The notes under the pieces: generated by a model
The model's database searches: none
What the model saw: only the letters and a program-made list of their open reading frames with translations
What the model was told of the DNA's origin: nothing
Assembly: GCA_001643675.2 (NCBI GenBank)
Contig: LSRY02000040.1
Location: 1-64,000, forward strand
Source: Monocercomonoides exilis PA203
Lineage: Eukaryota; Protista; Preaxostyla
Reading direction: 5' to 3'
DNA length: 64,000 nucleotides
In this document: in pieces, positions 11,766 to 11,795 of the stretch
Layout of the letters: each line of letters starts with the position of its first letter
Position numbering within the stretch: the stretch's first letter is position 1
Program-made: the position numbers and the translations under genes

Positions 11766-11795
11766 CCCTAACCCTAACCCTAAACCTAGTTTGAA
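11766..11795 (+). repeat. Interstitial telomeric tract plus the telomere-interrupting 11-mer
   Basis: CCCTAACCCTAACCCTAAACCTAGTTTGAA, in the same orientation as the terminal telomere. Confidence 0.95.

Follow-up and report, generated by a model that had tools for sequence, protein, structure and literature searches.

De novo telomere addition, or chromosome healing, is carried out by telomerase on a broken chromosome end after priming over 1–6 nt, and this priming is usually described inside the template of the telomerase RNA. Interstitial telomeric tracts of the TERC-ITS kind were reportedly first described in an earlier paper. Among 41 vertebrate TERC-ITS loci a single one, from Xenopus, is of type C, in which the head-to-head repeats follow a fragment that was copied from the telomerase RNA directly downstream of its template (PMC8537989). 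The excerpt considered here of a report on Pyricularia describes telomere relics and MoTeR relics, former chromosome ends that were internalised beside telomere-specific mobile elements, and this excerpt, as far as it extends, mentions no non-telomeric start motif (PMC8381367). TTAGGG telomeres have been published for Monocercomonoides exilis (PMC6759080). Here we describe a short telomeric tract that lies between two tyrosine-recombinase-like genes in a window of 64,000 nucleotides of M. exilis DNA (the whole stretch that was analysed). Protein homologues assign this window to M. exilis, an oxymonad.

The closest described form of this site is the type C TERC-ITS. Both consist of a short interstitial telomeric tract where a break occurred and show microhomology of a few letters at the join; on the G strand both have, upstream of the repeats and in the same orientation, a non-telomeric piece, which in both is attributed to RNA immediately 3' of the template, the RNA source in M. 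exilis being a predicted one. The M. exilis form differs from type C in being routine (four of six true chromosome ends and eight of 23 buried tracts), in its nested start points, in its recurrence inside telomeres, and in having on its distal side another element instead of the remaining half of the broken locus. With de novo telomere addition the site shares a break in unique DNA, short in-register pairing and repeats in telomere polarity, whereas many M. exilis starts would lie up to 11 letters beyond the template, so that non-telomeric letters would be written first. Like the Pyricularia relics, as presented in that excerpt, it is an internalised end with a short telomere-polarity tract beside mobile elements and without target-site duplication; MoTeRs, however, are retrotransposons, while the M. 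exilis units encode a tyrosine recombinase and a Myb-like segment (PMC8381367). New at this locus is the breakpoint-level evidence from cut and uncut copies, and the points of difference from the described forms are the frequency of the form, its nested starts and its burial by a recombinase-Myb element. Literature searches of incomplete coverage returned nothing specific on off-template priming and no telomere-targeted recombinase-Myb elements.

The site at 11766–11795 reads (CCCTAA)3, an extra A and the 11-mer CCTAGTTTGAA, followed by atctgg. The features of the window to which the argument refers are the following.

109–3232, plus strand: terminal telomere array of 3.1 kb, without the motif at its own join to unique DNA
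1305–1315, plus strand: 11-mer within the terminal telomere
1622–1632, plus strand: 11-mer within the terminal telomere
2633–2643, plus strand: 11-mer within the terminal telomere
8409–11120, minus strand: YR1, tyrosine-recombinase-like ORF of 903 aa with a Myb-like segment and a weak XerD match; the burying unit
11121–11765, minus strand: 5' leader and inner end of the YR1 unit; a tract 0.5–1 kb 5' of a YR gene is also seen at other loci
11766–11783, plus strand: buried telomeric tract of three CCCTAA repeats, in the polarity of the terminal telomere and spanned by DNA contigs
11784, plus strand: extra A (one T more on the G strand); the same slip occurs within the true telomere of locus L002
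11785–11792, plus strand: added portion of the 11-mer, CCTAGTTT, missing from the uncut paralogue in four runs
11793–11795, plus strand: GAA common to the motif and the uncut chromosome in the paralogue alignment; candidate 3-letter priming overlap
11796–11879, minus strand: leftover YR2 tail past the in-frame TAG, coding-homologous in the paralogue alignment
11880–14279, minus strand: YR2, tyrosine-recombinase-like ORF of 799 aa with R, K, HxxR, W and Y motifs and a C-terminal Myb-like segment; the cut element
14811–14825, plus strand: second buried tract, without the motif, which cuts an 857-aa ORF whose homologue in locus L011 runs on
20615–20629, plus strand: third buried tract, with three motif letters and a left flank as in loci L010 and L011

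The window contains the 11-mer exactly four times, at 1305, 1622 and 2633 in the terminal array and at 11785, where it stands directly behind the longest internal telomeric tract of the window, 8.5 kb inward of the terminal array. This placement is not due to chance, because a match at one given position has a probability of 4e-7 and this one sits behind the longest internal tract. Around 0.04 copies are expected in the 61 kb of non-telomeric sequence. The join itself is real, since it is spanned by contigs from three DNA runs, two of them without difference and one with a single gap; in run X1 the spanning contig has a depth of 95, compared with about 100 in adjacent contigs. The three runs come from one sample and are not independent of the strain of the assembly, and the genomic data as a whole represent one strain and one assembly. 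The motif has just 11 letters and the assembly is Nanopore-based (PMC8767320), both of which would speak for a chance match or an assembly artefact; in view of the probability at this position, the spanning contigs and the recurrence of the same join at other chromosome ends, we attach practically no weight to that explanation. The layout proposed in an earlier reading of the sequence alone (hereafter the sequence-only reading), with unique DNA on the right, is confirmed in the sequence and in the DNA contigs. The extra A that it had noted as a difference is indeed absent from 19 of 20 telomeric copies but present in one within the true telomere of L002, which rules it out as a distinguishing mark of the copy at 11785.

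The right flank of the site is coding DNA of YR2. DNA similarity of this flank to the YR2 paralogues extends to 11807, and in the alignment the paralogues continue for about 70 codons beyond the point at which the window turns into the motif; these codons and the 3' end present in the paralogues were lost from YR2 at the break. An in-frame TAG at 11880–11882, which the contigs confirm, lies 29 codons ahead of the break and is a sense codon in the paralogues. The closer paralogue (about 90% identity; 21 differences in 210 letters) could be aligned from 12002 down to exactly 11793 in four runs, three of DNA and one of RNA, and continues beyond 11793 for at least 331 letters in run X3 and 3,369 in run X1. 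In the RNA run, the one for which the letters of the continuation were displayed, it proceeds in frame from ...HVPDF to GESDSQEEKP and is colinear with the EEKP of locus L006. As the uncut paralogue matches to 11793 and runs on, the chromosome supplied only the GAA at 11793–11795; the eight motif letters before it, like the extra A and the repeats, are an addition. Judging by this comparison, the internal tract marks an old chromosome break inside the recombinase gene YR2. As at TERC-ITS loci, the tract stands inserted at a break for which an uninterrupted homologue exists; here the homology is confined to the proximal side, and distally a different unit follows.

The comparison took in 12 further subtelomeric loci of the same assembly and covered 323 kb of subtelomeric DNA. 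When full-length copies of the 11-mer were classified by their flanks, as had been suggested in the sequence-only reading, 20 had telomeric repeats on both sides, three had telomeric repeats on one side and unique DNA on the other, as at 11785, and none had the opposite arrangement. The two other copies next to unique DNA are the real telomere boundaries of L002 and L012. Telomeric repeats lie distally of all 23 copies, with unique DNA distally in none, so that the motif is always centromere-proximal of the repeats; the reciprocal join (unique DNA, 11-mer, CCCTAA), which the sequence-only reading had not found in the window, is likewise absent from the 12 further loci.

Over 29 joins the motif forms a nested series cut at different points, with 2–6 letters common to the uncut DNA. 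Between 5 and 11 motif letters terminate four of the six true ends and eight of the 23 buried tracts. At least eight motif letters are present at eight of the 29 joins, where the null gives each join a probability of at most 0.006 (P below 1e-10); some of the buried joins are related, and the eight represent five different element ends and three true ends. The occurrence of two full copies as the innermost unit has a P of about 0.001 under random placement. As in de novo telomere addition, the break and the added sequence overlap in register, by GAA at the 11793 site and, in comparison with uncut homologues, by AG (L006 end), AG (L002 buried), AGTTTG (L010 end), TTT (L012 buried) and AA (L012 end) at five other joins; at the L002 end, where the homologue is 91% identical, the overlap with the uncut copy is ambiguous. 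At the remaining joins the overlap is with the ordinary repeat and reads CCC, CCCT, TAA or C. Such a set of joins would be expected from broken 3' ends able to pair at any point of one string, CCCTAACCTAGTTTGAA, and to be extended from it. At the L010 and L011 counterparts of the 20615 tract, five and eight motif letters are followed by unrelated right flanks. Within telomere arrays the 11-mer is the commonest non-telomeric insert, at about one per 130 repeats.

We read the site as a fossil chromosome end whose two seams arose in different ways; the 11-mer marks the healing seam and is no recombination core. In our judgement telomerase was probably primed on a broken end through RNA 3' of its template and added a few repeats, after which a YR-Myb element was captured distally. 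A healed break had been among the options of the sequence-only reading, and it is supported by the cut YR2 with its uncut paralogue and by the same joins at true ends. The first step, visible in the alignment, would be a break or erosion in the 3' coding tail of YR2 that left a G-strand end ...GATTTC-3'. Its terminal TTC would then have paired with a GAA of the telomerase RNA, the outermost letters of an 11-letter stretch that adjoins the normal template on its 3' side; this stretch would have been copied through into the template, with one T slipped, and TTAGGG repeats added. The telomerase RNA predicted in this way reads 5'-(C)UAACCCUAACCUAGUUUGAA-3', its source running from the template into CUAGUUUGAA, and positions 11785–11792 would be a copy of the part that directly follows the template on the 3' side. 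Likewise, a telomeric GGTT end primed off-template would give the constant 11-mer inside telomeres at about one per 130 repeats. The start point and the insert would be constant inside arrays because the array primer always ends in telomeric GGTT, while at breaks the start point would vary. We infer that a single template string accounts for the nested starts, at true and at buried ends alike, and for the unvarying 11-mer of the arrays. The third step, whose layout is seen directly, would be the joining of a YR1-type element and the DNA beyond it through telomeric repeats on the distal side, by recombination or by break-induced copying from another end, with three repeats left. A random fragment of old telomere was also considered as the source of the motif and was rejected: the motif occurs once in 130 repeats and yet sits at the join.

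The attL and attR sites of tyrosine-recombinase elements, such as those of lambda Int, Cre/lox and Cryptons, bear an outward likeness to the M. exilis site, with two unlike arms and a shared short sequence beside recombinase genes. The sequence-only reading had proposed a hybrid att-type junction composed of a telomere arm, a core, here taken as a fixed one of 11 bp, and an element arm. The position between two recombinase genes, the catalytic motifs (R, K, HxxR, W and Y) kept in both YR1 and YR2, and the inner ends of elements that adjoin telomeric repeats at fixed points would all suit such a site, but the supposed element arm is mid-gene coding DNA that is continuous in paralogues, not the defined terminus of an element. 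YR2-type and neighbouring DNA meets telomeric repeats at 11793, 12735, 14825 and 14883, the last of these a confirmed true end of L010. The core is variably shortened (window 20615, L010 and L011) and is lacking in some copies of one element (L003 versus L012, L001 versus L004), and its reciprocal is absent from the 323 kb of subtelomeric DNA. A search for inverted recombinase-binding arms in 11641–11830 gave a longest inverted match of 7 letters, which does not flank the motif. In metagenomes, 23 related recombinase loci are without the 11-mer; these relatives adjoin the repeats of their hosts, CCCTAA or CCCCAA. Unlike attL and attR, the M. exilis site is without a fixed core, a fixed right arm, a reciprocal site or inverted arms, and its join lies inside a gene. 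We therefore consider a recombinase att site very unlikely, and the proposal is not upheld.

Two observations on the metagenome relatives may be added. At loci L019–L030, which lie beside CCCCAA (ciliate-type) tracts, the sequence at many joins is nearly constant to the left and to the right of the tract, in contrast to M. exilis with its ragged right sides, and these loci may show intact element ends. At locus L016, TTGGTTG stands just left of the tract, as at YR1, which is a lead only.

The distal seam is the boundary of the YR1 unit with the tract at 11765/11766. YR1 and YR2 are both oriented toward the telomere; NCBIfam gave a weak XerD match to YR1 only (E 4e-4), Pfam gave no recombinase match for either ORF, and a PDB sequence search gave nothing useful. 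In nine pairwise comparisons of related element ends, left flanks are constant within element families (87–100% identity over 60 letters in seven pairs, the other two matching near the seam only) and right flanks are unrelated (15–42% identity), and copies of the same element bear differing lengths of the motif, or none. These fixed left and unrelated right flanks would fit capture by exchange within the repeats. In the same nine comparisons the shorter tract is a prefix of the longer, and tracts are hence at least partly inherited with the element end.

Inheritance with the element end raises another explanation, in which tract and motif arrived together in the terminus of the YR1 element: the broken YR2 end would have annealed to this terminus by 3-letter microhomology and copied it, by break-induced replication if the source was DNA or by terminon-like end attachment if it was an RNA of the element, and telomerase could still have written the motif earlier, at another end. 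In related element ends the tracts agree from the first letter onward, even in their variant repeats, and only their stopping points differ; 30 letters are common to L002 and L009, and the tracts at window 20615, L010 and L011 have a nested three, five and eight motif letters. Most buried tracts are very short, mostly 9–30 bp, and the GT..AG introns of spliced YR2-paralogue RNA lie on the strand required for copying of this kind, although the introns are present in the genomic copies. Against copying of a terminus, the nested joins at four of six true ends, where 2–3 kb telomeres have no element beyond them, need telomerase too, as do the 20 copies flanked by telomeric repeats on both sides. 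If priming took place on telomeric DNA, the motif would be encountered in only about one of 130 repeats; a DNA donor thus offers it too rarely to account for its presence at four of six true ends. A search of nine and then three further subtelomeric loci gave no close copy of the YR1 inner end. Taken together, these points leave delivery by the YR1 terminus unlikely, though worth keeping in mind, and we favor healing by telomerase followed by capture.

The sequence-only reading had also raised a plus-strand RNA with a telomeric template and the 11-mer on its 3' side. If the locus at 11766–11795 were itself the telomerase RNA gene, template-like repeats with the motif 3' of them would be expected, and they are found in this order. 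However, the extra A is missing from 19 of 20 telomeric copies, so an exact match of template and product is wanting; the flank belongs to the coding DNA of a recombinase that was cut at a break; the sequence folds no better than shuffled ones (z 0.40); Rfam gave no match; and the same form is seen at two true ends. One RNA run had no contigs over 11766–11792, where contigs show presence, not absence. A gene for this RNA at the locus itself is accordingly extremely unlikely. The more general part of the proposal, that some RNA carries the 11-mer 3' of a telomeric template, is probably right, with the RNA encoded elsewhere. A 21-letter pattern of template plus motif had no match in JGI metagenomes, and literature searches found no telomerase RNA described for Metamonada.

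The buried scars probably spell out part of a telomerase RNA. If this is true, they read out about 20 letters of a Metamonada telomerase RNA and give a search string, AACCCTAACCTAGTTTGAA, together with a direct test for a candidate RNA gene, and the pairs of cut and uncut copies map priming registers in vivo. On the same condition these pairs suggest an enzyme with a loose 3' template boundary, with healing often begun outside the template. For the recombinase-Myb family it would mean that the 11-mer is not an att core and that any site-specific step takes place either within the repeats or at the distal seam. In their sequence many of the buried tracts resemble one passage over the template, TAACCCTAACCTAGTTT. 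We would put forward only tentatively that a coupled cycle of healing and capture builds M. exilis ends, with an extended multi-register priming arm 3' of the template that seals breaks; similarly speculative is its second half, in which recombinase-Myb elements would be captured on a newborn telomere after one to few template passes. The literature searched held no described counterpart of a telomerase-seeded, DNA-element-based extension of chromosome ends.

Several further features of these loci were recorded. Buried tracts of 11–20 bp that start in one phase, TAACCCTAACC, are numerous in L001, L002, L004–L009 and L012 and include the one at window 14811; the common phase may reflect a 5' template boundary or a fixed crossover phase. 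The reverse strand of L012 carries, at 13194–20679, tandem units of about 1.04 kb joined via TAACCCTAACC, and the left flank of a single tract in L005 resembles these units. The 857-aa Ser/Pro-rich orphan ORF at 14816–17389 is a cut copy of a 1627-aa gene (L011) and takes its stop codon from the buried tract at 14811–14825; in L010 a true telomere caps a third copy of the gene, which was cut at the position corresponding to 14883. Three ends share the unit at 14825–20629 with 88–90% identity. A subtelomeric repeat at 3705–5199, with a palindrome at 4090–4152, recurs in L002, L004 and L006. L002 and L006 each have it cut and capped by a telomere, at points that differ between the two, and in the window its orientation is inverted.

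RNA contigs of the YR2 paralogue in run X5 skip 11820–11924, 12058–12201 and 12888–12947, with GT..AG ends on the plus strand; these are spliced transcripts antisense to the recombinase ORF that run toward the centromere. Other genes in the vicinity of these ends include one in L010 (3228–4166) with Viral_Rep and RNA_helicase Pfam matches (CRESS-type Rep), about 10 kb from the chromosome end, an IS1595/Merlin-type DDE transposase ORF at 41583–42314 of the window (E 4e-15) and an ORF with a weak hAT dimerisation match at 22698–23906. The outermost 110 or so bases of the window (1–108) resemble TTAATT in degenerate form and probably result from erroneous base calling at the tip of the contig. 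A loose end in run X1 joins unique DNA to TAACCCTAACCTAGTT and then to a match with the window from 11683 (TGATATC...); this is probably another buried scar, with a TGA overlap, in a copy of the YR1 end. The YR copies of L001 and L004, which are on two different chromosomes, are identical over their aligned part and over 60 bp of the element end, with unrelated proximal DNA, and this identity reflects a recent move of the YR element.
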